DNA of 64,000 bases from Oikopleura dioica (lineage: Eukaryota; Animalia; Chordata): the NCBI GenBank assembly GCA_907165135.1, contig OU015567.1:682001-746000 (forward strand), given 5' to 3'. The translations under genes were made by a program, and so were the position numbers. The number at the start of each line of letters is the position of its first letter. Position 1 is the first letter of the stretch. The notes under the pieces are model-generated. The model was not told where the DNA came from, searched no databases, and worked only from the letters and a program-made list of their open reading frames with translations. This document shows, piece after piece, positions 2,841 through 63,600 of this stretch.

Positions 2841-7444
<4,604 letters not shown>

Positions 7445-11710: not shown

Positions 11711-12442
11711 GGGACACGGGCGAGCAGCGCGGAGCCGAACTTCACGCGCTCGCCATTATTCTTGAAAATGAGATTTTCAAAATTTCTTTTGCAAATATCA
11801 TCTACAACTCTTCAGCTTTCTATTCCAGTTCTCAGTTTGTCTCTATCATTACTGACTGACGAGCTAGCGAGAAAAAGACGCGCAACTTAGAAAACGCATC
11901 AGGTCCTTCAATCTTTATAATAATTTCATGAAATTAGCACCATTGAAAAGCCCATTAAATTTTGAGCAGATCATACGTATAGCGCTAAGCTGAAAATGCA
12001 CTACTTGCGCAGGACGCGCTGATAAACCTAGGAACTTAGCGCGCTCCGCACGGCAGGGCGCTCCGATTTAACTATTTTGGGCTCTTTCGACATGATTCCC
12101 GCTGGGCGCGCGCTAGGTTACCTTGTTTATCTGATCTTTATCGCCAATTAGTATATTTTCAGCTTAGCGCTATACGTATGATCTGCTCAGAATTTAATGG
12201 GCTTTTCAATGGTGCTAATTTCATGAAATTATTATAAAGATTGAAGGACTTGATGCCTTTTGAAGTTGCGCGTCTCTTTTTCTCGCTAGCTCGTCAGTCA
12301 GTAATGATAGAGACAAACTGAGAACTGTAATAGAAAGCTGAAGAGTTGTAGATGATATTTGCAAAAAAATTTTGAAAAATCTCATTTTCAAGAATAATGG
12401 CGAGCGCGTGAAGTTCGGCTCCGCGCTGCTCGCCCGTGTCCC
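11711..12442. mobile_element. 732-bp foldback element with about 290-bp near-identical arms, TTAA TSD and GG...CC termini (Kolobok-like)
   Basis: TTAA at 11707-11710 and 12443-12446. Arms begin gggacacgggcgagcagcgcggagccgaac and differ at only a few positions. Confidence 0.9.
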
Positions 12443-18724: not shown

Positions 18725-20181
18725 ATGGCTTTTAAATTTGCCCTTGCTGCCGTCGTGGCTGGCTCACGAACTGCGCGAGATGCCCAACAAGACCTCGTCA
18801 ATTGCCGAGTAAGTACAGAGATATACAGTCATTTTTGGAAAGGCAGTCAAATTGTCTTTTGTCCTTTTCTTTATGAATTCCTCAAAGGCTAGGGTTTGAA
18901 GGAAATTTTTCTTAAGAAAATATTCAGGACACGAAACCTTGGCTCAGCTGTATCACTGCCTACACCCGAGGCGAGTGCTTCGCCAACATCGGCTGCGATC
19001 GAACCTGCGGTCAATGCTCCTCCAGCGCTTGCTACGATCGAATTCCGGTGCCACATGTCAAGCTCTACGAGGATAACGCCCCGGTCCGCGCGATGTGGCC
19101 AACAATCGGCAACCAGAACGGCCAGAACTCCTTCCCCGCTCTGAAGGAACTTGAGAGCCGAGAGGGTTTCCCCTTCGAAGAAAGCAGCATTTCGAAGTTT
19201 TGCTTGGACGTTTTCAACAACGGCCTTTGCGATTCATGGGATCAGCTGACTCTCCATTACGAAGACGCTAGCATCCTGTTGACTGGCATGCCAAACGAGT
19301 ACTGCCAGTTCACCTGCGGATACTGCAACGATCAGACGTCCGATGATGTTCACAACTCATGCGTGAATGCTCACAACAATATCATGACACTTCTTGCCGG
19401 GGAGAACAAAATCCAGAACGTCTTTGATTACGGACTTGGTGAAGAAACTACCACTGAAGGACCAGCTTCAACAGAATCACCAGCCATTGATGAAGCGGAA
19501 GAAGAAGAAGACGAAGGAGAGGAAGAAGAATGTGATTGGTTCTGTCAATTCTTCAGCGGAGGAGATGCAGAACACTCAAACACCTGGTGGAGAAGGCGAC
19601 GATCGGCCATCCCACTTGAAAAGCGAGAAGTCATCGTTTCCGCGATCGAGTCGATTCTCAAGAACTCCAATGTTCGAAATCGCCGAGAAGCAGAAGAGGT
19701 CCTCTTTTCCGAGTTTGGCTGGTTTACGAACGAGTTCAACGCTCCAGAAGCCGTAACAACGAACCACGCCGATGGGTTGGAGAACTGCAACGACAAACTC
19801 TTCGCCCAAAACGATGGAGATTTGATCGAGGAAGAAGAAATTGAGGAATTTGAAGAAAACGAAGAGTTGATGAACCCGTTCAGTCAAATTGCCGAACGTC
19901 GATGGCCACAAGATAGTGAGGCTATTCAAAGATACTTCAACAAAAAGTGAGTTCCATAGCTAATCATTGAAGACTAACATTTTTCAAGCTCGAATGTTAA
20001 CCTCGGCGAGTGCCAATGGGTCGAAATCCCGGCGTCAGCAGCTGAAGAACTTGAAGATCTCGCTTCGACTGAACTCACTTATGACTGCTCGATCAGCTGT
20101 CCCGAAGGAACAGCACTTTTCATTTCCGACAAGGAAGCCTCCGACGAGGAAATCCGAATGAACTGCAGGAAAGAGGCTTGA
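18725..20181 (+). CDS. Secreted ShKT-type Cys-domain protein with acidic linkers and furin-like sites
   Basis: Signal MAFKFALAAVVAG. Cys motifs CRDTK..C...C..GCDRTCGQC and C...C...EYCQFTCGYC. Sites RRRRS and RNRR. Confidence 0.65.
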
Positions 20182-20854
20182 TAGTATCCACTCTTCTTAG
20201 AACAGATAAAGAGACCGAGCTGAAACCGCTAAAGGTATTTCGCGGGCCAAACGCGCCCCAGCTCTGCGGTCAATTTGCGTAAGTTCGAAGATTCTCTTGA
20301 ATCTTTCGTGAACCGCTTGTCAAAGTTGCGCAAGGTGGTAAATTCAATTTTCCAAATTCTGACAAATTCAATTTCCTCAAATTCTTGAAGTTCAACTATC
20401 AAGCCAGGAAAAAGCAAAGATAGTCGATTCGCCACAAACATGCAACGGGATTCTTCTTGCCAAGCTGCCAATTATTGTCCCAACAATATCTGTGAGCGAC
20501 TCGAATGTCGGGAAGTTGAGGAGGAAGAAGGAGAAGAAGTTGAAACTTTTGAATGGGACTTTTAAATTCACCGAAAATGCCTTCTTTCCTCTGAACTCAA
20601 GCAACAAAATACCCATCTTCAATAAATTTACCTATTTTCTGCACGCATACGACTTGCTCTACACTTTTGCTCTTGAAAAATTGGTCTCCGAGTTTTTATG
20701 TTATCATGACAACGCATCGTAGGCTAATTGTCCTGCAGTTAAATCAACCGTGATGAGTTCACGCTGACTATCTCATTGTGTCCATCTTTTTATTGTTTTG
20801 AAGTCTCGTATTCATAAATTAAGAACCAAGACTCTTGGTTCAAGAGAAATAAAA

Positions 20855-32240: not shown

Positions 32241-32413
32241 GCTATAAATTATATATTATAGCCTATAATATATTTTTAAAATAAGTGTGAACAGTTTTTT
32301 CCATCTTTAGAGGCCCCAACTGAAGAGGACTTAATTATAATAATAATAATTAATAATTATAAAAATTTACAAGCATTTAATTAACAAGCATTAATATCAA
32401 GACCTCATATTAA

Positions 32414-32748
32414 GGACCCCCCCGTCAACAATTTTCGAAAAATCTATTTTCGGAATTTCAAAATTTTGACCCCGGAAATGGATTCTACGGGTAAAAAAAC
32501 GATTTTGAGGCTTCATTTTTTGGGGGTCTATCTCGACTCTAACACCCTCAAAATCGCCTTTGAAAATTGGAGTTTTTGACGAAAAATGATGAAAATGGTC
32601 TATTTTCGCTAGAAAATCAGTTTTTCTTGGGCAAAAATTGCTCCGAACAAGTTTATCTGATGTATTAAACTTCCAGGTACACTCAGAAGCCAAAATATGG
32701 CTGTTCTAAAATTTTCGAGTTTTTGAGGAAAATTGTTGACGGGGGTCC
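32414..32748. mobile_element. 335-bp TTAA-flanked GGACCCCC MITE (Kolobok-like)
   Basis: TTAA at 32410-32413 and 32749-32752. TIR ggacccccc(c)gtcaacaatttt. An inverted copy lies at 52923-53253. Confidence 0.85.
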
Positions 32749-35716: not shown

Positions 35717-36374
35717 GAGTCACGCTAACTTCCCCAAGACGCTAACTTCCCCAGACGCTAACTTCCCAAAACGCTAACTTCCCCAACATTGTGCAAGTTA
35801 GCGTCTGGGGAAGTTAGCGTCAAAGTTGCCGGTTGCAAAAAATATTTTTTTTCTCGAAATTTTTATATCGAACACTGAATACAGTATTCAGAAATTAAAT
35901 GAGCCATTATTTCTAAGTAATTTAGACAGAGGTTTGAGAATTCAGGCATTTTTTGGGATGAATGTTCTAATAATGACGCTTCGAAATAATCAAAAATATT
36001 TTATTATAAATAATAAGAGCTTAGAAATTTTGAAATCGACTGTCAAAATGAGTGTACTCTCGGAGTACAAAAAATATTATTTCAAAACGTTAAACTAAAT
36101 TTGCTCAAAAGAAATGGAAAATATGACCGCTTTTCACACGGAAAGGTCGAGGTTAGATTCTAAGAGGGAACTGACTGTCTACTAGACTAAGACATGCTCA
36201 GCATTCAGTAAAAGAGCCATTCAACGCTCCACGGATCGCCCACGCACTTTCGACGCTAACTTGCCCAAGACGCTAACTTGCCCAAAACGCTAATTTGCAC
36301 AACCTTGGGGAAGTTAGCGTCTGGGGAAGTCAGCGTCTGGGGAAGTAAGCGTCTTGGGGAAGTTAGCGTGACTC
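35717..36374. mobile_element. 658-bp Mutator-like foldback element with perfect 9-bp TSD and subterminal 16-17-bp tandem repeats
   Basis: TGATTTCTC at 35708-35716 and 36375-36383. Termini gagtcacgctaacttccccaag / cttggggaagttagcgtgactc. Confidence 0.85.
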
Positions 36375-48621: not shown

Positions 48622-50472
48622 ATGAAGATGATACGAAGATTGCTGCTTTTTCAGGAAAAAATTACAAAATTTCATTAAAAATTATAAAAAGCGGAAATTT
48701 TTCAAAAATTTTTCGAAAAATTTTTGGAAAAAAATTTTAATAAATTTCAAAAATTATCGAATTTTTCAAAAGACAGTCGTTCTTGCTCAATTCAACGAGC
48801 TCGATCTGTACAATCGACCGCGAAAGCCCCGGCCCAATGCGCCGAGAATTTACGATGCAAGTGATGCACCTCTTGAAGACTTCTCCATGCTTGATGATGC
48901 CCAAGTGATTCAATACGAAGACGAAGGGGAAGAAGAAACGATGGACGCTCCAGCGTTGATGAGTGGTATCAGACCGCCCGTAAATATCATGGTCAGAGGT
49001 GCCAGGCAGCGAAAGCTTGGGTTTTGCAATTTTTTATTTGAATAACTGCATATAAAGTTATTTAACTATGACTCATACTGTGTGACTTTCATCATACTAT
49101 TCTTTATTTACAAAACTCTTGACTATTTTGTTAATCCAATCGCGCAAATGAGAAAAAAAAATATAAAAATTTTTAAGAAAATAATTTTTCTGATTTTAAC
49201 GCGACTTGAAAATTCTCGAAATTAAAAATCCCGAATAGAAAAGAAAGCAAGCGGCAAAAACAACTGCTGCTCCAAGCACAACAACCCTTCAAATCAACGA
49301 AGAAAATAATGAGAAGATGCCAAAATTTGCTAGGTTTTTGCTTCAATTTTCCCTTTTTCAAATGTTTTTTTAAAGAACCGCGGCAGAAGACGAAGTTGAA
49401 AACATTCAGTTTCGGATGGAAGCGATTGTTCAGGAGGCGAAAAAGTGGGTGTTCAATAATATTGGGCGAAATTCGCAAAGAGATCAGCTGAAGGCGAAAC
49501 GACTTGTGCAGAGGCTGGATGCTCTTCCGGATCGATATGCTAAAGGAATGTTTGTCAGAGACAATAAAGAGAGGATAAAATTGACAAATTTATAAAAAAA
49601 AAGCGAGGTCAGTTTTGATCCCCTTTCAAAAAAATAGAAATAAATGACAATTCGTTGGCCATGAATCATGTGATAAACCAGAAAAAAAGTTTTCGAGCGC
49701 TGCCGAAGTCCAGAAGACGCAGCTCTGATTGCCGAGCGCAAGAAGCAGCGCGAACTGGAAGGCGGCGAAAAAGGTGAGAGAATGGACAAGGACGAGAAAG
49801 AGCTCATCAAGGAAGAAAGAAAAGCAGCAAATGCGATCAAAAAGGAAGCACGGCTCAAGAAAAAGGCCGAACGACTCGAAAAACAAAGCTCAAATGGGGC
49901 TGAGAATGAACTGACAACTGTAAGAAAAGTCGGTTGTTTGCAATCTACATTATGATGATTCTAGAGACGAACGGATGACTTGGAATTCCTGGCGCTAGAA
50001 CGAGAATATGAAGATTACACCTGGGTCCGAAAACGACGAGAAGCGGAACCTCCGAAAAAGGGAGGAAAATTTCGACCTGGAAGAGTATCTCGGCGGCCAG
50101 AAAAATACTTTCACTTTTTGCAGAATCAAATCAAAGACAGAAAGTAAGGAAGAAAGCTGTTAATTCTTCTATTGTTTTTCTAGGCTCCAGCGAAACGAGT
50201 TGAAGTGCGATAACGAGCTGTACCCCGACTGTAAGAAAAAAGGCAAAGCAGGCGCTGATGCTCGTCGAAAATTCAGACCAAATGCACAGGAAGCTATGTG
50301 GACCAAAATTGTCAGGGCGATGCGACTCGCTCCACTTGAGGTAGCAAAATCTTTGTTTTCAGTTTTTGATGTTTCGCTTTCAGATCGCGGAAAATTGCCA
50401 CATATGGGAACGACTAGAAAAGAAAACGTCGAAATTAAAAGAAAAGGCATGGAAGTGGTTCTTGGAGACTGA
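48622..50472 (+). CDS. Hypothetical secreted, highly charged protein, multi-exon
   Basis: MKMIRRLLLFQ/TVVLAQ signal peptide formed by a GA-AG splice, followed by several open charged exons. Confidence 0.5.
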
Positions 50473-52681
50473 ATCTGGCCAAGTGAAGGGTCGTGAATTG
50501 AGAATACTCATTCGCGAGGAGAGAAATTGATGGAGATCGTGAAATCGCGAGCTCTAGCAACTCACTGGCGCCATTAATTTTACAGGTTTTTGTTCTGATA
50601 TTGAGCTCAATAGCAGAAAATCAACTTTGAAAAAGCCTTTTGAAACCAATGGGCTATTCAATTAACCATCAAGAGAGGTTTTTCTCTAAGCCAATAAGAA
50701 ATCCCAATTTTTTCCCAATCACAGGCGAGCAAAACCCCATGGCCCATAACGCCCCCACCTTTGAGCCTATAAAAAACGACCACTTTTATCTTCTACCAAT
50801 TTGAGTCGAGCAAAGCCCCCTTGCCCTCCCCCCTCGATTTTTACCCACCCCTCGCCGCTAATTCTTATGAAAACTCAGTCTGGGTAAGGTTTCCGACCCA
50901 ACAAAAGAACGAGTGAACGCTAGAATGATCAAAACGACGAAAGAAAGATTCCACTACACTGAATAAACCCGAGATCTGATGCCTTGCCAATCTCAAAAAA
51001 AAAACATAAAAAACTGTATATTCATTTGTTTACTCGTGTTTTAGTCCCATAAACTTTACAAAAAGGTGATGATCAAGTCTCCGGAGAAAATCGTGAACTC
51101 AAAAACCGGCAACTTTAAAAAGAAGAAGAAAAAATCGAAAAAGCAAATTTTAAAAGAACAACAACAAAGAGGATGAGAAATTGGCAAAAGAAAATCTCGC
51201 GCGATGAAGCTTTTGCGACTTCAATCCTCTTTTTTTCTGTAAATATTGAATTTTTAAAAGACTGAAAACTAAAAAAATAGACGCCATTTTCATCGAAGCT
51301 GGGGAGCAGAGAATGGACGATCTATTTTTTATTCCGAGAAAAATGAAGCTGTCCAAAATTTTATGGTGAATAAAATTGATCCAGTTTTACGCCAACTCAA
51401 TTGTTTAATTTTAAATTGGTGTAATTCTTTTGAAGGATGACGGTTCAATTCAAGCGTAATTGAAAATGTGTCAAGATTGAATTAAATTTGCGAATACCGA
51501 GATAATTTGGAAGGCTTTTGGAAGGTTCCCTATTCGACTTTTTATGCACGATTAAGAGATTCTGCTCCATTCTTGAAGATTAGAGCTACGCACCTGAATT
51601 ATTAACGGTATGCAAGATGGAATAGACAGTCGTTTATTTAGTCGATTTCAGCAAAATTATCATCGGCCATGAATCATTTATTTATCCATAATGTATAGAC
51701 TTAGAGATTTTCATGCGTAATTTTACAGTTTCAAAGGAGGATGTGCTTTAACAAGGTCTATTATCATCTCTCGAATTTCGGCTCTTGAAACAAATTGTGG
51801 CGCAAAAACATGAGAAGCGCCAATTCCGAGAACTAATTAAAATATTTCCAATGTTTCGAGAAAAAACCTCAATTCTGAATAATGAAGCCTTTGGCTACAA
51901 AAGTCCTGAATTAGGAAGTTGAATAATAAATTCAGAAAATGTACTGTATCTACTGGTATACTGGATTGGTGTTCGAGACCTTTCCTAGAGGCTCATTGTC
52001 CATTCTGTATCGCTTTTCGTCGGTTCAATCGTAAAATACACAGAACAGCAGTTGACACTAATCGAGTCAAAATGCCGCTGAATTTAAAAAATTAATCGGG
52101 TTGAACCGTTCCTTTGAATTGCTGCGGCTGATCCGCTGAATCGTCCGCTCATGTCTTACTGTACTTGGTTCTCCGATAATTAATTGAATTTATCAATGGG
52201 TAATCGAAACGACAGGTCTGCAGGAAAATGACCTTTGCTTATCAGTGCTGAGCTGGGAGACCGTTTCTGATCTTTTCGAGAGACGCCATTTTGCGAAACC
52301 GAACCGTGGTGGCGGTGGCACGTAGTCAAATTGCGGTAAAGGCAATTCTTTATGAACTCGTTTTGATCCTAGAAAGCTTAATAATTTGTTTCTCTATATT
52401 CTTGGCTAAACTAACCGCCAATTCCCATAAGAGCTCTTTTGATAGTTTTCTATCTCTCTCTTTTTTAGAGCAAAAAAAGAGCATATTTGCAGAAAGTCAT
52501 TCAATCGGTAAAAAATGAATAGAGAAATTTTTTTCTTCGTTAAATAAAAAAAAAACTCTTTCATCATTGAAACAAGGTTTGTTATTTTTTGATGATTATT
52601 GGTCAGAAAAAATAATTAACAGCAAATTTGCTTCAGGAGATTTTTCTGATCTTGTCGGACAAATTAAACATCTTGGATTAA

Positions 52682-52905
52682 GGATCCCCCTCAACAATTT
52701 TCGAGAAACTGAAAATCGGGTGTTCGATATTTTGACCCAGGAAATGGATTCTTAGGGGGTCTATTTCGACTCTTTCAACCCGAAAATCGCTTTTGAAAAT
52801 TGCAATTCTGCCCGGAAATAAAGGAAAAATCGAAATTTTCGCGATAAAACCCATATTTTTTCTGAAATAATCATACAGGAAAAGGAAACCCGAATCATTC
52901 TAAGG
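52682..52905. mobile_element. Deleted relative of the GGACCCCC TTAA MITE
   Basis: ttaaggatccccctcaacaattttcg start and a shared internal gaaatggattc...gggggtctat core. Confidence 0.55.
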
Positions 52906-52922
52906 ACCTGCCAATCGATTAA

Positions 52923-53253
52923 GGACCCCCCCCCCCTCCGTCAACAATTTTCCTCGAAAAATCGAAAATCGAAAAAAGCCATATTTTGGCTTCTCAGCGT
53001 GCCTAGAAGTTCAATTTATCTTAAAAACTTGTTCGGAGCACTTTTTGAACAATAAATCTGAAATTTTGGCATAATTGGCACTTTTTCGTCATTTTTCGTC
53101 AAAAAGTCCGATTTTCAAACGCGATTTTGAGGGTGTTAAAGTCGAGATAGACCCCCAAAAAATGAAGCCTCAAAATCGTTTTTTGGCCCGTAGAATCCAT
53201 TTTCGGGGTCAAAATTCTGAAATAGATTTTTCGAAAATTATTGACGGGGGTCC
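52923..53253. mobile_element. 331-bp TTAA-flanked GGACCCCC MITE, inverted copy of 32414-32748
   Basis: TTAA at 52919-52922 and 53254-53257, with high similarity to the other copy. Confidence 0.85.
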
Positions 53254-54043
53254 TTAAAATCATTATCAGAAATATGGGTGGTCCTTAACTTCGCAAAATA
53301 GAAGAGTAAAGCATCATTATTCCAGTTCAAAATTTAGGTCAAGGAAGAAGAGACGATAGAATGACATATTTTCATTAAGAGTACCTTCTGCATATCTGTT
53401 TCTTTCGTAGATTACAGTAAATCTGACCAAAGCCCATTATGACGCCCCTTGTGTGCTGGGTCACGCTTTTTGGGCGAGCTATCATTTTAAAAATTGAAAA
53501 AAGCAGCTTTCAAAGAAGATTCTTCCATTTGTTGATTTACCTTGTCATTTTTTAGAAGAAAGATATTCATTAGATTACTTGCTAATTCGTGTGCTAAGGT
53601 GATCAAGAAGCCGCCCTTCTGAATATTGAGAGAGCTGACGAGCGCCAGTCCATCTTCCCGTTTACTGGAAGTTGATTATGAACGATTATTTTCCGTCTTC
53701 TCTCAGGAAATTTTCAGTTTTTTTTTGTTTTTCAAAGAGAATAATTTATCGAGAGAAAATGCTCAGTTCGATTATTGCCTTTGTCTACAGGAGTGGTACG
53801 AGATTTTTGTTGAAAAATTTGGACTAGAAAAAATTAGTTTTTTTTTTTAATTTTTAATTTGGGTTATTCAGATTGGAGTTGAGTAAAGGTAAGGACTTAG
53901 GATTTTCAAGTAAAAATTAGGTTAGTGGTTAGATTTTTCAATCGAATTTGTGAACTTGTTTTTGTAGTAAAACCATTTTATCCGAAGAAAAAGATAATGC
54001 TTGAAATTTTTTTCGTTGAAAAATAAATAACCCTAACCTTAGC

Positions 54044-54272
54044 CAGGGTTTGAAAAGTCACAAATTTTGACTGAGCATAGGCACGGTTGAGCATTGGCGT
54101 GCTCAGATTTCGCTGAGCCTGAGCATGTTTGAGCATCCGTCGGCTCAAATTTCGCTGAGCACTCGAATGCTCAGATTTTATTGAGCTTGAGTACGACTTA
54201 GCTCGACAAGCTGAAATTACCGTTGAGTTTGAGCACACTGAGCATGCTCATGCTCAGACTTTTCAAACCCTG
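54044..54272. mobile_element. 229-bp hAT-type MITE (CAGGG termini) with perfect 8-bp TSD
   Basis: ACCTTAGC at 54036-54043 and 54273-54280. TIR cagggtttgaaaagtc. Internal tgagca repeats. Confidence 0.9.
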
Positions 54273-54469
54273 ACCTTAGCACTCCTTCATTTCGATTAAA
54301 ATAATAGAAATTATCCTGAAATAATTCTGATTTCAAATAATTCTGAACTCTTAAATCTAATCCGCTACTCTTACTAATATAGTGCGAAGTAGAAACACTC
54401 AAATCTATACCCTCCCCAAATATGCTAATCTCGAGCCACGAGCAAGTTTAAGTATCAATATTAAATCGA

Positions 54470-56279
54470 GCAAGATGTTTTATTTCATTTTCAGCCTTCT
54501 TTTTCGGCAGTTTCGCAAATCTGATTGTTTTCTTTGCACTTGTTTCCATGAAGAACAAATCTCCCAGGCAGGAGTCAATGATTTTAAAAGCAAAATTAAC
54601 TGAAACGATCAAAAATTGATGCATTCCTTTTCAAACGATCGACTCCATTGAAGCGAGGTCTATATTCTTCATCTGGTACGTCGAGTTCAAATATTTGATT
54701 CATACATTGCATGACAATTAAGACACTAACGGACATCTTATATGTCTGTTCACTGCCGCTTTTCGCCATTAGCGCCTATCTCGAATTTACTTGGATCTTT
54801 GGCGCGTTTCTTTGCCGCCTCAATGCGTTTTTATTCTACGTGGGCATGTTTGACAGGAGTTTAAAAAGACGCGTTTATTTGCAAGTTTCAAAATTAATCG
54901 AAGAAAAGTCAAGTGAACTCAATGAAAGCCATGTCATTTTTTATCTCAAGTTTATCACTGGAAAGATGTTCAACTCTTCGAAATTCATTCGTTAGAAAAT
55001 CAAAAACGAGCCTAGTCCATCAGACTGGAAAAAAGTCGCACAAAATTATCATCTTCTTTTTATGGCTTTTGGCGATCATAGGCTAGGGTGGGCATAATTT
55101 TGTCCGTCGGAGTACCTTGGCCAATCAAAATCAAGTATTTTTTCTATCAGCGAATCAAAATCGAGCATTTCTACTGTCAGCCAATCAAAATCGAGGATTT
55201 CTTCTTTAAACAAATCAAAATCGAGGATCTCTTCTGTAAGCCAATAAAATCGACAATTTTTTCTTTCGACCAATCAGACGCCAGAAAGCTACCTTGAAAG
55301 GGTGTCCTTTGTCTTGAAAACCCCCGATCCTCCGAACATTTGCCCACCCAAGATCTTAGGAGCCCTGCCGATATATTGGTATACAGGTTCTCCAAAGTTA
55401 CTCCATTCATGTCAAAAGATCATTCAGACACTATTTCTACGTCGCGTGAAAAATGCATCGACGGCACTTGCAGAAATGTGACCATCACGAGAGTAAGAAT
55501 ACATTTTCAATTTCTCCAGAATTTACCCCTCGATAAGTGCATACCAAATTTCGACGAGAACCTGACCGCGTTGACAACCTTTTCGGCCATCAGAATTATT
55601 GGTGGTTTTCTCATTCCGTTTGTTGTGTTAATTGTCGCCAATTCATTATTGATAACCATCGGTAAATGGACGAAACTGACCAAGCTATTGAGAATTTTAT
55701 TTATCTAGTGCTCCAGCTCAAGTCAGAGGTATCGGCCCAATCTGTTGTCGCCAAACGAAAAGGTGAGATCTTATTCTCTTAAAATCGGCAAATACAGTAA
55801 TAACATTAATTCAAATCTAAGCAATATTGGTCTGCCTTTTGATAGTTGCTGTTTTCTTCGTCACGTGGTGCCCAAACCAAGGATCGGTTACCAGGCCTTC
55901 TTCAATCAACCTTTGATTGAGTCCCTTGTAAGAAACGTCTTGTTAACTGGATTCAGTAACATACACGCTAATAACAATTCCTGTGATCTACAACTTCATC
56001 GTTCCAGAAGAAAACATGATCGGCCTGCCTTCCATCATCCCCTTCATGCACATCATATCGACCTGCTTCCTAATCTTCGGCTCCTGCATTAACCCCTTTC
56101 TCTACGCCCTCTACGGCCGGAAGATCAAACGCGCAGTGATAGTCGTCTTGGCCAAAATCGGCTTCAGGTCGAGAATACAAAGAGACGTCAAAGTTCTTGT
56201 TCTTCAAAAAGAAGAAGCGATTTCCAAAGGAAACTCGAATTTTGCCCTGGTCAAAAGTCAATCATCAGCTTCTGTATAA
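54470..56279 (+). CDS. Class A (rhodopsin-like) GPCR, multi-exon; N-terminus unresolved
   Basis: TM1 FGSFANLIV, TM2 VYILHL/TLTDILYVCSLP, WIFGAFLCR, TM3 SLSLERC, TM4 WLLAIIG/ALP, TM5 GFLIPF, TM6 TWCPNQ, TM7 SCINPFLY. Confidence 0.85.
55083..55352. mobile_element. 270-bp CT...AG element with 8-bp TSD inserted in GPCR TM4, forming a precise GC-AG intron (55082-55359)
   Basis: Termini ctagggtgggca / tgcccacccaag. TSD ATCATAGG (55075-55082) and ATCTTAGG (55353-55360). Internal array of about 30-bp units. Confidence 0.8.
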
Positions 56280-56366
56280 ATTTTGCACAGTGTATATTTT
56301 TTAAAATTTTGCAAGTTTAGTAATGAACTTTTGAACAAAGAATTTCAAATTGGTCGTTTTTTATTT

Positions 56367-57909
56367 TCATTTCTTCAGAGAAGACAGTCGTTCGTGGAAG
56401 AGTTTTTCGATGAGAGAGTAGATTTCCATTTCGTATTTCTTAAAATATTGTCTGAATATTCCGAAAACCGTTAAAAAGAATAGAATTTCCCGGTTTTTAG
56501 TCAAAGAAAATCAAATTCTCGAACAAATAGTCTGAATTTTCCGAACTAAACCAATTAATGAAAGTGGACCAATAAAATTGCTCTATTTGGCCTACCGGCC
56601 AATCAAAACCCTTATCCATAAAATCACTTCGATAAATTGGTTTCACCCAATTTCTTCTTCAACTTACAAGAATTCCATGTTCCAAAGCTTCTCTCGTCTC
56701 ATTTGAGTAAACCGCCTTGATCTTCGACTTAGATTTGCTTCTCTTCTTCTCAATCGCCGGATTTTTCATCATCTCCCTCGCTCCATCAAAATACCCAGGA
56801 AGAATATTTTCCAGGATTTCGAGCGTTTCGTCAAATTTTTCCAAAAGGCCGACGAAGAAAAATTCACGGAGAATGTTTTTCTTTGCGATTTCCGCCGAAA
56901 TTGCCACCTTGCTCCATTTCGTCTTGCCATGAGAAGAGTGCTTGTTGCATTCGTCGGACGTTCCGCAGAAGTATTTCACCATCACTTGGAGAGCGTCTGT
57001 GCATTCAGGAACGGATTGTTTGACGCAATCGTCGAGGGACCGGTCGAGATCTTCTGCCGAACCGTGGAAGTTTGTCCTACTGCCGGATTTTCCCATGCTC
57101 CAACTTAAAAAGGGCTCAAAATTGGGGATGGAAAAGCGCGGCTAGTTTGGTAAGGGATACCCTTATTTTTATCTTTTTTGAAGTTATTCTGTAATATTTA
57201 TTGACAATTTGAGACTATCCATTATTATTTAAAGCGGGTAATTAATGAGCCCTTCCCCGAATCGCTGGAAATAATATCTTGACGCGAAGCGAGTGACTGG
57301 ATTTCTCGCTACGTTTATAAACGTCGGCATAGGCAGATCGAACTCCGTAAAATTAAACCAATGATGATGCTTCAGCAAAATATATTTTCTTCCTTTATTC
57401 TTCTCCAGCGTCTTTCGCATGTAATTTGCGAAATCGCGCCGACCATTCGGCCCATCGTCGCGGTAAGGCTCGTAGCAGTCGTCTTTGTGGATGCAGAATC
57501 GTTGGTGGTCCAGTTTGAAGTTGTTTCGTTTTTGTAGATGGCTCATCAGCCATTTCATCGTTGTTGAACCCGACTTTGGCAGTTTGTTGTGGAAGACGAA
57601 CATTCCATTTGGCGGCCTATAAAGGAAATTAGTTGGATTCGTTCTGGATTCTTTCATTATTATCAGACAATACCTCGATAAGCCTGGAAATCGAAAGCTT
57701 AGTTCTTCATCGTCCTTTTTCTCTCCATCAAAATTAATCTCGAAATTCTCCGCCAGCACATCATCCCCCGAAAATTCTTCCGAAAACTCCAGCTCATCAT
57801 TTCTCTCCTCATTTTCGCCCCTAACATCGCCTTCTCGCTTGAAAAGATAAAATTGCAAGAATAAAAGAAGAACAACGGAAGCTAGAATTCTTTGCGGAAG
57901 AGGCCTCAT
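56367..57909 (-). CDS. Uronyl/heparan sulfate 2-O-sulfotransferase-like type II membrane protein
   Basis: N-terminal TM, FHNKLPKSGSTT, FINVARNPVTRFASRYYF, YFCG, AKKNILREFFFVGLLE, YEMEIYSLIEKLF. Confidence 0.8.
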
Positions 57910-58374
57910 TGAGTGCTTTCATTAGTAATTCAAGTGAGAATGCCGCATGTTTTTATCGAAACATTTCAGTGCATTTTTTATGTGAAAGGGCCGGGGGCGG
58001 AACCTGCGGATTACGGCAAAGCAAGTGTCGCTAGAATTCCTCATCGCGGCTTTTCAGATGAAATTTGAAATATGAGAATTTTTTTTGTTGATTTCTCGAC
58101 AAAAAGAGCATATTTATTCATCTCATTTACAGTGAAGAAAAAGATAGAAAAGAAATGAAAAAGAGCTGATAAGTATGAATTTATCTTGAAAAAGCCCAGG
58201 AGCTTCAGGACCTGAGCTTTGTTCATCGATAAATGTAGAAATTTCTAGCAGGAAAAAGCGAGGGAAAAAAGAGAGAAGAAATCATCAAGCTTTTGATTTT
58301 TCTTCTGAGTCACATTGTTTGTACAAAGAGTTTTACTTGTATTTTCATTCGTTCGTGTTAGATGATTTGGAGAC

Positions 58375-59621
58375 TTAGAGCAGGCAGCCCATGGCGTGGA
58401 ACTTCTTGTCGGTCAAAAACTTCTTTTGTCGATGAAGCATTTTAACGGCCACGCTTGGCCGCTTCATTTTTCTTGCTCGTCGTTCTTTCTTTGTTTCTCC
58501 AGGGACTTTGTCCGCTAGCGAAATGCCGTCCATGCAGACGTACGCGTAGTGGAAGGTCCTGATCGAGTCGACAAAGTTTCCAAGGGCGGCGCAAGGGTCG
58601 GAAAAGTCGGTTGTTGGTTGCATGAAATCATCGCCGGTTCCGGGCATCGCCTTTTTTGTGCACGGTGGGTCGACGGAGCTGTGGTCCTTCATCCAGACGA
58701 ATCGTTCCATGATTTTTTGCATGTGGGCTGACTGAAAGAGAGGGTTAAAATGAACTTTATTGGAAGAAGCAGATCGTTAATGACAAAAATAAGTTGGAAA
58801 AGGTACCTTTTTGTTCTGGATATGATCTTGTCGATGACCATGGCCGTTGAAGACCTCAGTCTTCAAGTTTTCAAACGCGTTGTTGATCATATTCCAAGCG
58901 AGCACATTTTCCGGCAGGTCGATGAGAGTGAAGGTAGCAGTGAAGCCCCGGTGGACGACGGTGTTTTCGTTTGTTTTGAAAACGAGCGTCATGTCCTCGC
59001 GAGTCCCGAAAACAGGCTCAACTTCGATCGAGTTCGACTTGGGATCGTTTCCGCAGTATCTGGCGAGCTCGGCGTTTCCGTCAGGGCCGTTGATGATGAT
59101 GGCCGCGTCCAAGTTGCACTCGCCGTTGACGTCGGCTTCTTCAACGTCGAAATTTGCGAAAGAGACGGAGATTGACTTCTTTTCCGGGACGGTGACGTAG
59201 ATTCGGTAGTACTTGTTAGGCAAGTATCGATCGTAACCGCTCGCATCGGGGAAGACGGGAACGGACCAGGAGGCGGTGGGATTGTCGGCGTCGAGGGTGA
59301 AGGCCTGGTAGTCAGTGACATCAGCGGTCCAGATTCGATCCTCAGAGAGGGCTGTTTCGTCGCCCAGACGGGCTGAGGCAAGAGCAGCAAATGACCAGGC
59401 AAGCTAGATTCAAAATTATTTCTCTACTCAACGATGTTTATTTTCCTGACACTTTTGAACAGGAAAAAATTACGAATAAAAATACGACTCTATGATGAAA
59501 AATGTCAAAAACATTATTTTCAAAACATTTCTTCATATTTTTACATGTATCTCTTGATCTGCTTGTAGAATACGAAAAATTAGCGTGGGAAAAACACGAA
59601 GGAAATCGATCTTACCTTCAT
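58375..59621 (-). CDS. Secreted CUB-domain protein
   Basis: Micro-exon ATG AAG/GTAAG at 59621 joins LAWSFAALASA to give a signal peptide. CUB-like ISVSFANFDVE..C..D...RYCG...LVFKTN..VHRGFTATF. Confidence 0.7.
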
Positions 59622-60665
59622 TTTCTGGAAGTCTCTTCAAAAAATCAATTTTCCGAACGAAGAAAAAGTATGATGACAAAAAGCGGACGCAAATGCATTT
59701 AAATAGAGCGCTACGTGTTTTTAATAAAAACTACAAGGCGCCCGAACAAATTTACGCGGTTTTTAGCAATAACAGACCTTAATGTTCACGATCACAATAA
59801 TTGCTAATTCTCGTGAATGCTCAGTTTACATTTGAGACAACGTGTGGCGCTTCCTGGCGAGTTTCTTTTTTAATTGAAGCGCTTTTTTCAAATTCAATTA
59901 GTAATCATGCTCTTTAAGACTTATTGCTTCGAGTTTATAACGGTCTAGATTTGATAATTCGATACCACCGTAGATAACGGATATTACAAAGTAGTTTTCT
60001 GCTTTGGTAAAATTTATTTACTTTGATTGAAAGAAGAAAAGTGCTCTCAGTAGTAAGCATTATCTGTTTTCATTTTTAATTGAAGATAATTTACAGTTTT
60101 TCGCTCGAAAGAATACCAACTCGTCTTCCCGATTCCAAAAGACCTCGACCGGCAAGGCAGATGAAAAGGGGAGGAAAAGCGGGTTTAACGGATTCAAGAG
60201 CTTTAACGTAGTTCTGTTTCGGAAAGTTGGAGAACTTAAGTTTTGGGTTCGAAAAGAAAGGGGTTGGTTATGGAGGGTATGTACAAATTTAAGGTATATT
60301 CTGCAGATTTATGATGAAATAACAAGCTTTATCTCTAAAAGGAAGGAGGTTCTGAGGGGATCAGGTGACTTTTTTCCGGGCTCAGGACTCTTCTCTGAGT
60401 CAGGAGCCTATGAACTACAGATTCTGAGAAACCTGAGTTATTGACCCTGAGTCTGGGTTCCATAAAAGAAGTCCCCTTTAGGAGCCTGATTCTTTTAGAA
60501 AAAGAGCTTGTTTTTTCTACGAGGTGTTTATAGTGCTTCGGGAAATGCAATTCGGATACACAAACGCTCGGATTTACGAGTGTTTGTGACGAAAACATTT
60601 CCGTATTGTCGAATTTACGAAAAGAAATAAAGAAAAAAATAGTCATGGTAAAAAAGCTAAATAAA

Positions 60666-63600
60666 TTATGAAGCAGCAGTTGGGGTCACGATCGAGTCGC
60701 TTGTCGGCAGTGAAGTGGACTCGTGCAAAGATCCGTTTTCGGAGCATTTCTTTCTTCTGAACAGCTCTCGCCAGAGTGCCGCTGCGAGCAGAAAAGCAAG
60801 GAGCTTGACGCCGATCGTCAAGCCGAAGTAGATGTAGCGGAAAATATCGGGACTGGAAAATCAATCATTATCAGTTTTGCGAGCAAAGAATACCTGTAAA
60901 TTGCGCACGCGCCTGTATCGTCGTCGCATTCAGAAGCAGTATTGTCCCAAAGAATGCAAGCCATATCAATAGCGGCGCCAAAATACATGGGGGCCTACAA
61001 AATATCATTATTTTGGTAATGAAATGCGAACTTACGGGAATATAAGCAAGCAGTCGCATGATGAGGAACTGGACACCCATCGCCAGCGGTCTTTCATCAT
61101 CTGCGCAGCAACGGAGGGTAATCATAATCGCAGGAGTCTGGGCACTAGCAGTAACGCATGTTACGACAAAGACGAAGACGAGGAATGGCGCCATCATGTG
61201 GAAACAGTCCTTTTCACAAGCGCCTGAAAGGATGATCAGTTTTATCATATCGAAAGAGGCGTACCAGTGGGTATCGATGGCGCAGCGGGATTGCCAAGAC
61301 AGGCGCAATCAGCAAAGGAGCCATTGACTGACATCTGGCAGCCGGCAAGACAGGGGTTGACGAAAGTCACGTGCTCGTAGCACAGCGGTTGATAAACGCC
61401 GCTACAATCGCAGTTTTGATTGCATTCGGCGAGCGGCAGCTCCCCATGATCGCTAATCGTATCGCTCTCTATTCGAATCGGTAAAAAAGCGGTAAAGAAG
61501 AGTCCTTTCTACCTGTAGGATAGTCGATCGTGACGCCTGCGATAGGGGCGCTTCCGCATTTCAGAAAGAAAACAGGAATGATCAGGCAAATCGAGAGGAT
61601 CGAAGTGAAAGTGGCCATTTTCGCACAGCCGACCATGTCCAGATCGAAGCGACGGATCAAATACCCGCCCAAGACGATGCCAAGTCCGGCGGCTGAAAAA
61701 TAGAAATAAGCAACTTTCGTAACTAATGAATCCAAAGAGAAAAAAAAATTACAGGACTTCTTACCTGGCAAAAGAACGCCACCACAGAGCAAAGCAGAAA
61801 TTGAAGAATCGATGGAGAACTGTTCTTGAAGATATTTCGGCATAAAAGTAAGGAATGAAACGACGATTGTAAACTCGCAGCACATTGTGAGAGTCACCAG
61901 GGTGAAGGCTTTGTTTGACAGTTGTTTGATTAGGTTTCGAGGCAGATCTACCAAGAGGGGTTCAGAACGAAAGGAATAAGATTGAAAATTACCTTTTATA
62001 GAATTCCCAAAGCTCATCTGTGAGCTTGTTGTCGATTGATTGATGAGTTCTTCGTTCAATTCAGAATTCTCCGACGAGTTGAGCTCGACGATATTGCTAG
62101 GGTGGGTTTTGAATTTAATCGGGCAATCTTGGTCCTGCTCTCTCCCTGATCTTGAAAACATAAACCAAACATATCATACATGTATGGATAGAGCTTTTCA
62201 AGATCTAGCAACTCTGCATTGGAATTCCAAAAATATCAAATATAATCAGTTTTATCGGAGTTTTTCCTTCAAAACTGGGTTGCATTTTTGAAAATTGAAC
62301 AGTGCGAGACATGAATTCAGATTAGATTTCAACATTTTTAACGCCTGAAAACCGGTAATTTTTGGCTGATTTGTTATTCAAATGCAGAGTTTATCAACCT
62401 GTGGGAGATCGAAAAGGATCTGATTGTTAATTTTGGTGAAAACCGGCAATTCAGATAAAAATCCGTATGCAAAAACCGGGAATTTCTATAGATTTCGGAA
62501 ATTCCAATGCAGAGTTTGTAGAGCTCAAAAAGCTCTTTCCAACCATGTGTCATATGTTGGAGGTTTATTAGAAAAGTTCGGAGCTACAGCCAAAGAAAGA
62601 TTGCCCGATTAAATTCAAAACCCACCTAGGCGGCTGCTTTTTGAACAGAAACATGGGAAGCAAGCTGAGGAAAACGAAAACAGCGGCGATAAAGTATCCA
62701 AGCCACCACTGACCGACCCATCTTGTATCGGCTGGGCTGACGGAAGGCTCTTGAAACGGATCTACCCAGCGGTTTTCGACTAAATAGAAGATAGAAAGGC
62801 TGGTTTGATTGTAAAAATGCAGTAACTTGAACTACTCGGTCTTAATTGTGGAGTGTTTATGCAACAATTTCAATTGTTTCTAATTCAAGCGTTATCTTGA
62901 TTTCGGGAAATTGTCGGAATAAAGTCTGCCGAGCCGTTAAAAATAATCGAATTCCAGTTTGTTGAATAGAAAAATTTGAGTAAACTGTTAACTCATTTTC
63001 AAGTAGACTATTTCTCCTGGGTTAACGAAGCTATCACACTATTTTTGGTAAATAATCGATTGTTATGCATTAAATATTTGTTACTCTCTTTCTTACGAAA
63101 TCGAGACGAAGTTATTAAAGAGAATCTCGTAATTCAGTTCGATTTGCATACCCCCCCCCCATTACCTTGTGAAGCAAGAACATAACCAGCTGCTGGTCCA
63201 ATCGCTCCAACAAGATAGACCACCGAAACATAAACAGGCGCAGATCTCACTGGAGCAGCGTCGTGGACATAAGTCGTCCCTAAAATCCAATAACAGTCGG
63301 GGCCTTCGCCGTTCTTTTACCTAAAGTGTAAATGGGACTTCCACCCATGCCAATGATCAAATTAGCGAGCAGAAAAATGAACATGTAAAGCGAGTTCTTT
63401 GGGCCGACGTTAAGACAGTCGTCTGGATTGAAAACCGAGTAGTTTGACTGGCACAGGTCGCCGTCGATGCTGTTTGGGTCCGACCCGCTGGGCTGGTACA
63501 GACCCGAAATCAGCTGCGGAAGGGTGAAGAGGAGGGAACCCAGGACGACGAGGAAGCCGCCTCCTGCCACCTAAAGAATGCGTTTTTAGGAAAATGTTCA

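Follow-up and report, generated by a model that had tools for sequence, protein, structure and literature searches.

A 270-bp transposon-like element in the TM4 exon of an Oikopleura dioica receptor gene, most likely removed as a predicted GC-AG intron

We analysed a 64,000-nucleotide stretch of Oikopleura dioica DNA (GenBank assembly GCA_907165135.1, contig OU015567.1, positions 682,001 to 746,000 of the forward strand), called the window below and used for the numbering of all positions. It carries a gene for a class-A (rhodopsin-type) G-protein-coupled receptor (GPCR) in which the exon encoding the fourth transmembrane segment (TM4; the other segments are numbered likewise) is interrupted by a 270-bp element resembling a miniature inverted-repeat transposable element (MITE). 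The element has terminal inverted repeats (TIRs) and is flanked by a target site duplication (TSD). Judged from the sequence and its conservation, it is most likely removed from the receptor transcript as a predicted GC-AG intron. The receptor gene has the following parts.

54422-56279, plus strand: class-A (rhodopsin-type) GPCR gene, 11-exon model of 359 aa, with Pfam 7tm_1 and PDB matches.
54856-54928, plus strand: probable GG-AG intron of 73 nt in TM3, deduced from frame analysis only.
54929-55081, plus strand: exon with the end of TM3, the ERC (DRY-type) motif, intracellular loop 2 and the start of TM4 (FFLWLLAII-G), unannotated in the public model.
55360-55386, plus strand: 27-nt exon (G)ALPIYWYT(D), which completes TM4 and lies directly after the element.
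55409-56279, plus strand: public gene model g4088 (CAG5109568.1, 214 aa), extracellular loop 2 (ECL2) to TM7 only, start ATG 55409.
55882-55956, plus strand: GA-AG intron of 75 nt (WCPNQ/VTYTL junction), present in the public model and also conserved in a related lineage.

The public model was found by a search with the TM7 exon, which returned CAG5109568.1 of Oikopleura dioica OKI2018_I69 (chr2, g4088); the g4088 locus (L001) is 100% identical to window positions 49409-62279. Pfam 7tm_1 matches this 3' model with E 4e-12 over profile positions 133-260 of 260, and the PDB matches, AT1R and C3aR (E 1e-10), place it at about residues 180-330 of AT1R-like receptors. Because the public model covers only the second part of the 7tm_1 profile, a complete receptor needs upstream exons. 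Such exons were read at 54422-55386: TM1 (FANLIV), a 22-nt mini-exon (EVYILHL), TM2/TM3 (LTDIL ... C ...), which matches 7tm_1 with E 2e-6 at profile positions 28-70, and the exon at 54929-55081. The spliced 359-aa model has seven hydrophobic segments and the motifs N1.50, D2.50, C3.25, ERC, W4.50, P4.59, the ECL2 Cys, P5.50, TWCP and NPFLY. It thus belongs to the class-A receptors by profile match, segments and motifs, with the profile scored on the pieces rather than on the whole joined model. The 5' end of the model (ATG 54422, followed by a 33-nt GC-AG first intron) is uncertain. A PDB search with the TM4 exon alone gave no match, and there is no paralogue of the gene in the window. On these comparisons g4088 reads as a 5'-truncated GPCR, and the annotation apparently did not treat the element as an intron.

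The element and the intron proposed for it have the following parts.

55075-55082, plus strand: left, exonic TSD copy ATCATAGG; its last G is base 1 of the proposed intron.
55082-55359, plus strand: proposed GC-AG intron of 278 nt, TAG/GCTAGG...ATCTTAG/GA, equal to the element plus one TSD.
55083-55352, plus strand: MITE-like element of 270 bp, defined by its TIRs and TSD.
55083-55094, plus strand: left TIR CTAGGGTGGGCA, a G-rich stretch directly 3' of the 5' splice site.
55120-55264, plus strand: tandem repeat within the element, about 4.9 degenerate copies of a 30-bp unit, consensus start GCCAATCAAAATCGAGG.
55341-55352, plus strand: right TIR TGCCCACCCAAG, a pyrimidine-rich tract 5' of the acceptor, with a second AG at 55351-55352.
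55353-55360, plus strand: right TSD copy ATCTTAGG, seven bases of it intronic, with the acceptor AG at 55358-55359.

The original prediction had described a 270-bp element with TIRs and an 8-bp TSD, and this description was borne out. The TIRs are 12 nt long and complementary at 11 of the 12 positions (92%, one mismatch), and the TSD copies agree at 7/8 positions. The TIR motif (ends CTWGGGTGGGCA) was matched only twice in the 64 kb, by the two TIRs themselves, against 0.14 matches expected. When the whole window was scanned for TIRs (11/12 or better) immediately bordered by 8-bp direct repeats (7/8 or better), nine matches were obtained, representing about six independent elements; 30 first-order Markov simulations gave a mean of 0.13. 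The combined TIR and TSD structure is therefore not attributable to chance. The element bears genuine transposon hallmarks, and MITEs with an 8-bp TSD are common in the window. The RNA fold of the intron was no more stable than that of shuffled sequences (z 0.42), although the TIRs do pair. Searches of Rfam and of a phage DNA collection gave no match.

The upstream exon (...SLSLERC...FFLWLLAIIG) runs into a stop codon, TAG at 55084-55086, inside the element, and TM4 resumes directly after the element as ALPIYWYT; both had been predicted. Excision of 55082-55359, likewise as predicted, would join ATC ATA G to GA GCC and give WLLAIIGALPIYW, restoring W-L-L-A-I-I-G-A-L-P with nine residues from W4.50 to P4.59. 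The ends of this interval bear out the predicted composition of the splice sites: the donor would be made of the G of the TSD and the C of the element, and the acceptor AG lies in the duplicated target. After the element and one TSD are subtracted, zero intronic bases are left. The element therefore makes up the entire intron and is no passenger in an older one. The other introns of the gene are 33-80 nt long, and the 278-nt intron is the only one above 80 nt; lengths of 33-80 nt are typical of O. dioica, whose median is about 49 nt (PMC8008620). Neither the GA-AG intron at 55882-55956 nor the probable GG-AG intron at 54856-54928 has TIRs or a TSD.

The element recurs at an identical position in a related lineage. 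A marine-metagenome contig from ENA (ERZ17293588 NODE_1234940, here L002), found through its open reading frame (ORF) P0010 in a search with the public protein, aligns to window positions 54945-56448 with 88.7% identity. The left flank and the left TIR are unchanged and the right TIR has one change. The ends G/GCTAGG and TTAG/GA are conserved, enclosing an intron of 214 nt. The exonic TSD copy is again ATCATAGG, while the intronic copy reads ACCTTAGG, so that the intronic copy has drifted between the lineages and the exonic copy has not. The element of L002 is 64 bp shorter; the deletion begins just 3' of the conserved repeats and affects the final repeats together with what follows them. This length is not a multiple of 3, and the genomic frame relation of the flanking exons therefore differs between the lineages. 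The exons on both sides nevertheless remain constrained. The predicted spliced frame is open in both lineages over 262 aligned codons with no exon gaps or stops, while the introns and the element have indels. The exon at 54929-55081 has no indel, and the 27-nt exon is identical at 27/27 positions, while its flanking introns differ by about 10%. Divergence of the element (0.117 substitutions per site) matches the rate of synonymous substitution (dS 0.12) and that of the other introns (about 0.1). Substitutions in the aligned exons, with the ratio of non-synonymous to synonymous rates (dN/dS), were distributed as follows.

All aligned exons: 21 synonymous, 7 non-synonymous; dN/dS 0.10 (dS 0.12); binomial P against neutrality 2e-8.
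The 45 codons upstream of the element: 5 synonymous, 4 non-synonymous; dN/dS 0.22; P 0.037.
The part downstream of the element: 16 synonymous, 3 non-synonymous; dN/dS 0.056; P 7e-8.

The exons that flank the element are thus under purifying selection, and these figures support the view that the GPCR has been kept functional in two lineages that both carry it. Constraint retained with the element in place is difficult to account for if the mRNA still contains the element. Since the insertion predates a lineage split at dS of about 0.12, it is not recent. The original prediction had called the locus an intron-gain event; the transposon hallmarks, the identity of element and intron and the selection on the gene agree with this, but no empty site was found. 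An uninterrupted site, ATC(A/T)TAGGAGCC, or an orthologue of the upstream part did not turn up in protein searches with the TM4 and the TM2/3 ORFs. L002 carries the element, and a more distant related contig (L003) stops before TM4.

The proposal that the element represents a CT...AG family with an 8-bp TSD gained no support: neither the window nor the JGI metagenome contigs yielded a second copy, a weak negative, as the rest of the genome lay outside the search. A scan of the JGI contigs with the public protein found no relative, and when they were searched for pairs of the internal repeat unit at a distance of 30 bp, 14 loci came up, all unrelated to the element. In one DNA sequencing run, X26, contig depth over the element (at 92% likeness or more) was like that of the flanking single-copy DNA, and no joint skipping the element was seen in this run. 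That X26 might lack the element was considered on its word share of 0.86 and rejected, as X26 contigs contain it. The lower word share is due to six 1-bp deletions, all in homopolymers of at least 5 bases, at 54863, 54937, 55029, 55057, 55321 and 56297; there are zero substitutions relative to the window over 2.3 kb. Three of the six would break the TM4 frame. We regard them as read or assembly artefacts, because L002 supports the homopolymer lengths of the window at all the sites that it covers (all but 54863 and 54937), and they look like systematic long-read error.

We consider it probable that a transposon inserted into the TM4 exon, that it is excised exactly as a GC-AG intron, and that it has been kept as an intron of a functional receptor. 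The sequence of events may have been as follows. A non-autonomous DNA transposon (270 bp, 12-nt TIRs, 8-bp TSD) would have entered the TM4-coding exon in an ancestor of the Okinawan O. dioica lineage, at an exonic ...TAG/G proto-splice site. The first copy of the duplicated target would then provide the last exonic AG and the intronic G at +1, and the second copy the acceptor AG. Base 1 of the element would provide the C at +2, giving a GC donor. The TIRs would set GGGTGGG behind the donor and CCCACCC ahead of the acceptor, and pairing of their ends could bring the splice sites together. A spliceosome tolerant of GV donors (G followed by a base other than T) would have made the insertion tolerable at once, with exact removal restoring the original codons, and afterwards the insertion may have persisted in a working receptor gene as an intron like any other, drifting neutrally. 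Acceptance of GV donors is documented for tunicates including O. dioica (PMC13326754; PMC8008620), for which splicing of GA-, GC- and GG-AG introns is routine: about 11% of its introns depart from GT/AG (PMC8008620), and GV/AG is a recognised intron class in tunicates including O. dioica (PMC13326754).

Several observations weigh against this account. The insertion is read from the TIRs and the TSD by themselves, because neither an empty site nor a second copy was found. Constraint upstream of the element is measured over 45 codons only, and the start codon and first intron of the 11-exon model are uncertain. The donor TAG/GCTAGG matches the U1 consensus weakly. Three oligo-dT RNA runs gave 0 reads on 53800-56700, which is no test of splicing, and older RNA runs contain none of the sampled words from the locus. 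Finally, the RNA-seq-guided public annotation leaves the upstream exons unjoined across the element.

The element might be spliced at junctions other than those proposed. Enumeration of donors starting with G against AG acceptors gave two further stop-free, in-frame excisions near the ends. A GG-AG intron at 55081-55352 would give ...WLLAII-IL-GALP, with two residues more, and a GC-AG intron at 55072-55352 would give WLL-IL-GALP, with one residue fewer. Their shared acceptor, the AG at 55351-55352, has been conserved in L002 as well and is the first AG after the pyrimidine-rich TIR. Both excisions alter the W-to-P spacing, however, and class-A receptors hold this spacing at 9-10. The GG-AG donor (ATA/GGCTAG) has poor exonic bases at -1 and -2, and an AAG acceptor is weaker than TAG. 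The GG-AG choice would also place inside TM4 an I-to-T change of L002 (ATC to ACC), while the exonic TSD copy is unchanged. We therefore prefer the predicted junction at 55082-55359, which has the better exonic AG/G and YAG/G context and keeps the helix spacing, and we regard use of either alternative as rather unlikely. That the insertion simply broke the gene, so that this lineage has a pseudogene or a gene on its way to becoming one, is unlikely. Removal of an element and one TSD restores the frame for any TSD-flanked insertion, the oligo-dT runs contain no reads from the locus, and the public annotation is truncated, all as a dead gene might have it. A dead gene would not be expected to show a dN/dS of 0.10 over 28 substitutions accumulated since the split of two element-carrying lineages, to keep all its aligned codons free of indels and stops while the introns and the element acquired indels, or to conserve the splice dinucleotides in L002.

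A gene of which only the 3' half is alive would fit the public model, which begins at ATG 55409, and the selection, which is strongest downstream of the element. Expression would then start inside or after the element and cover ECL2 to TM7, with the upstream exons as relics. This start codon is AAA in L002, where P0010 has K for the M of the OKI protein. The product would be a three-helix fragment that matches only the last part of 7tm_1, and we know of no receptor function for such a GPCR fragment. Furthermore, the upstream exon has its own excess of synonymous substitutions, the 27-nt exon is 100% conserved, and the TM1-TM4 exons are unbroken and have usable splice sites; we consider this explanation highly unlikely. 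It is extremely improbable that the intron was not made by a transposon at all, being either an ordinary old intron with inverted ends that arose by chance or a pre-existing intron into which a MITE inserted. The failure to find a second copy (in the window and the JGI contigs) or an empty site would agree with such an origin. Against it, TIRs with an adjacent 8-bp repeat are expected 0.13 times per 64 kb and here sit at the exact position that would restore the codons, no residual intronic bases make room for an older intron, no other intron of the gene approaches this one in length, and other MITEs with an 8-bp TSD lie in the same window.

The proposed transposon-derived intron can be compared with known systems. 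Huff and colleagues are said to have described in 2016 Introners that derive from DNA transposons. Introners of this origin are documented in Micromonas, Aureococcus and others (PMC9860276; review PMC11282704), and in animals from two groups only, Oikopleura being unnamed in the main text (Gozashti et al. 2022, PMC9860276). The element shares with them the form of a short, non-autonomous TIR/TSD element in an exon. TIRs and a TSD lie at the ends of the proposed intron, and its splice sites would be built jointly by the element and the duplicated target, with excision predicted to restore the coding sequence. In contrast to Introners, which by definition occur as many near-identical intronic copies, one copy was found in the window and the JGI contigs, to which the search was confined. 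Its TSD measures 8 bp, against 3 bp in Introners. The division of the splice sites also differs, in that here the TSD would give the acceptor AG and the first donor base and the element would give +2 onward, with a GC donor. We read the element as an old, fixed, transposon-derived intron, for which the label of an Introner family is not earned.

A closer parallel in terms of host is Fritillaria borealis, also an appendicularian tunicate, whose MITE-derived non-canonical introns (Henriet et al. 2019, as summarised in PMC11282704 and PMC13326754) have TIRs and TSDs and non-GT 5' ends. According to these summaries such introns are thought to be tolerated through a permissive U2 spliceosome, which is the idea proposed here. 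They differ, in the same summaries, in that most are AG/AC or AG/AT introns that bear a YAY triplet, and in making up about 95% of introns genome-wide, whereas the element intron would be GC-AG and about 89% of O. dioica introns are canonical. The published descriptions of the GV-AG class (Bliznina et al. 2021, PMC8008620; PMC13326754) give, in the passages concerned with it, no transposon origin.

Within O. dioica itself, Denoeud and colleagues reportedly described GV-AG non-canonical introns in 2010. The proposed intron begins with G and a base other than T and ends in AG, and L002 conserves both ends; on these signals it could be placed in the class, as could the GA-AG intron that the public model has in the same gene. 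At 278 nt it is far from the median of about 49 nt. As a transposon, the element resembles hAT-type MITEs in its 8-bp TSD (ATCATAGG/ATCTTAGG; in L002 ATCATAGG/ACCTTAGG), its short TIRs and the lack of an encoded transposase. The TIRs of hAT elements usually begin YARNG, but those of the element start CTAGGG/CTTGGG, and YARNG fits them only if shifted by one base, which breaks the TSD. Our literature search found no paper on MITE-derived introns in O. dioica itself. The kind is already known from the Introners and the Fritillaria MITE introns, and the element is a new instance of it.

Other repeats were found on both sides of the receptor gene and elsewhere in the window. Just upstream of the first GPCR exons, 800 bp ahead of the element, lies a 229-bp MITE (54044-54272) with perfect 16-nt TIRs CAGGGTTTGAAAAGTC, starting CAGGG, and a perfect 8-bp TSD ACCTTAGC. 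At its ends the depth of X26 contigs is 164-214 against about 14 in the flanks, so that it belongs to a multi-copy family. Between the 3' end of the GPCR gene and a convergent sulfotransferase-like gene, a segment of about 200 bp (56449-56655) is absent from L002 and has an X26 contig depth of about 2350; it is thus a repeat of high copy number that was gained or lost at this place after the two lineages had separated. An inverted repeat pair of about 330 bp (52934-53260 and 32407-32745, 83.6% identity) represents another dispersed repeat family. Further MITE-like structures of 231-508 bp with TIRs and 8-bp flanks lie at 1580-2022, 20175-20405 and 35792-36299, and a long nested palindrome with TIRs and 8-bp flanks at 11796-12357.

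A 126-bp MITE at 5705-5830 lies in a minus-strand gene and has a perfect 15-nt TIR, CTGGGCTTGAAAACC, with the coding-strand flanks ATCAGATA and ATCAGACA. It lies within the gene of an NVL-like ATPase and interrupts the D1 AAA domain at a point that separates Walker A from Walker B. The pieces beside it match Pfam AAA positions 1-47 and 46-125, abutting at 46/47, and NVL in the PDB with E 3e-41. To be excised exactly it would have to be an AT-AG intron; a GC-AG alternative adds four residues. This MITE may be a second intron made by a transposon; otherwise the allele is null.

Two MITEs that split exons, in the TM4 of the GPCR and in the AAA domain of the NVL-like protein, occur within 64 kb, and we considered a genome-wide reading. 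It is possible, though we hold it only tentatively and think it on balance doubtful, that exonic MITEs with an 8-bp TSD are routinely neutralised as introns in O. dioica and have largely generated the GA/GC/GG-AG class. The duplicated target would supply the 5' G and the 3' AG of such introns, and base 1 of the element their second base.

O. dioica has undergone massive intron turnover, and the source of its new introns is debated. The locus offers a concrete, datable case in which a transposon appears to make up an entire intron, with splice signals predicted to come from the TSD and the TIRs. It also exposes a truncated public gene model for a receptor under purifying selection in two lineages. 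If the general pattern proves true, the GV-AG intron class would be linked to transposon insertion, and the case made for Fritillaria would extend to the model larvacean O. dioica.
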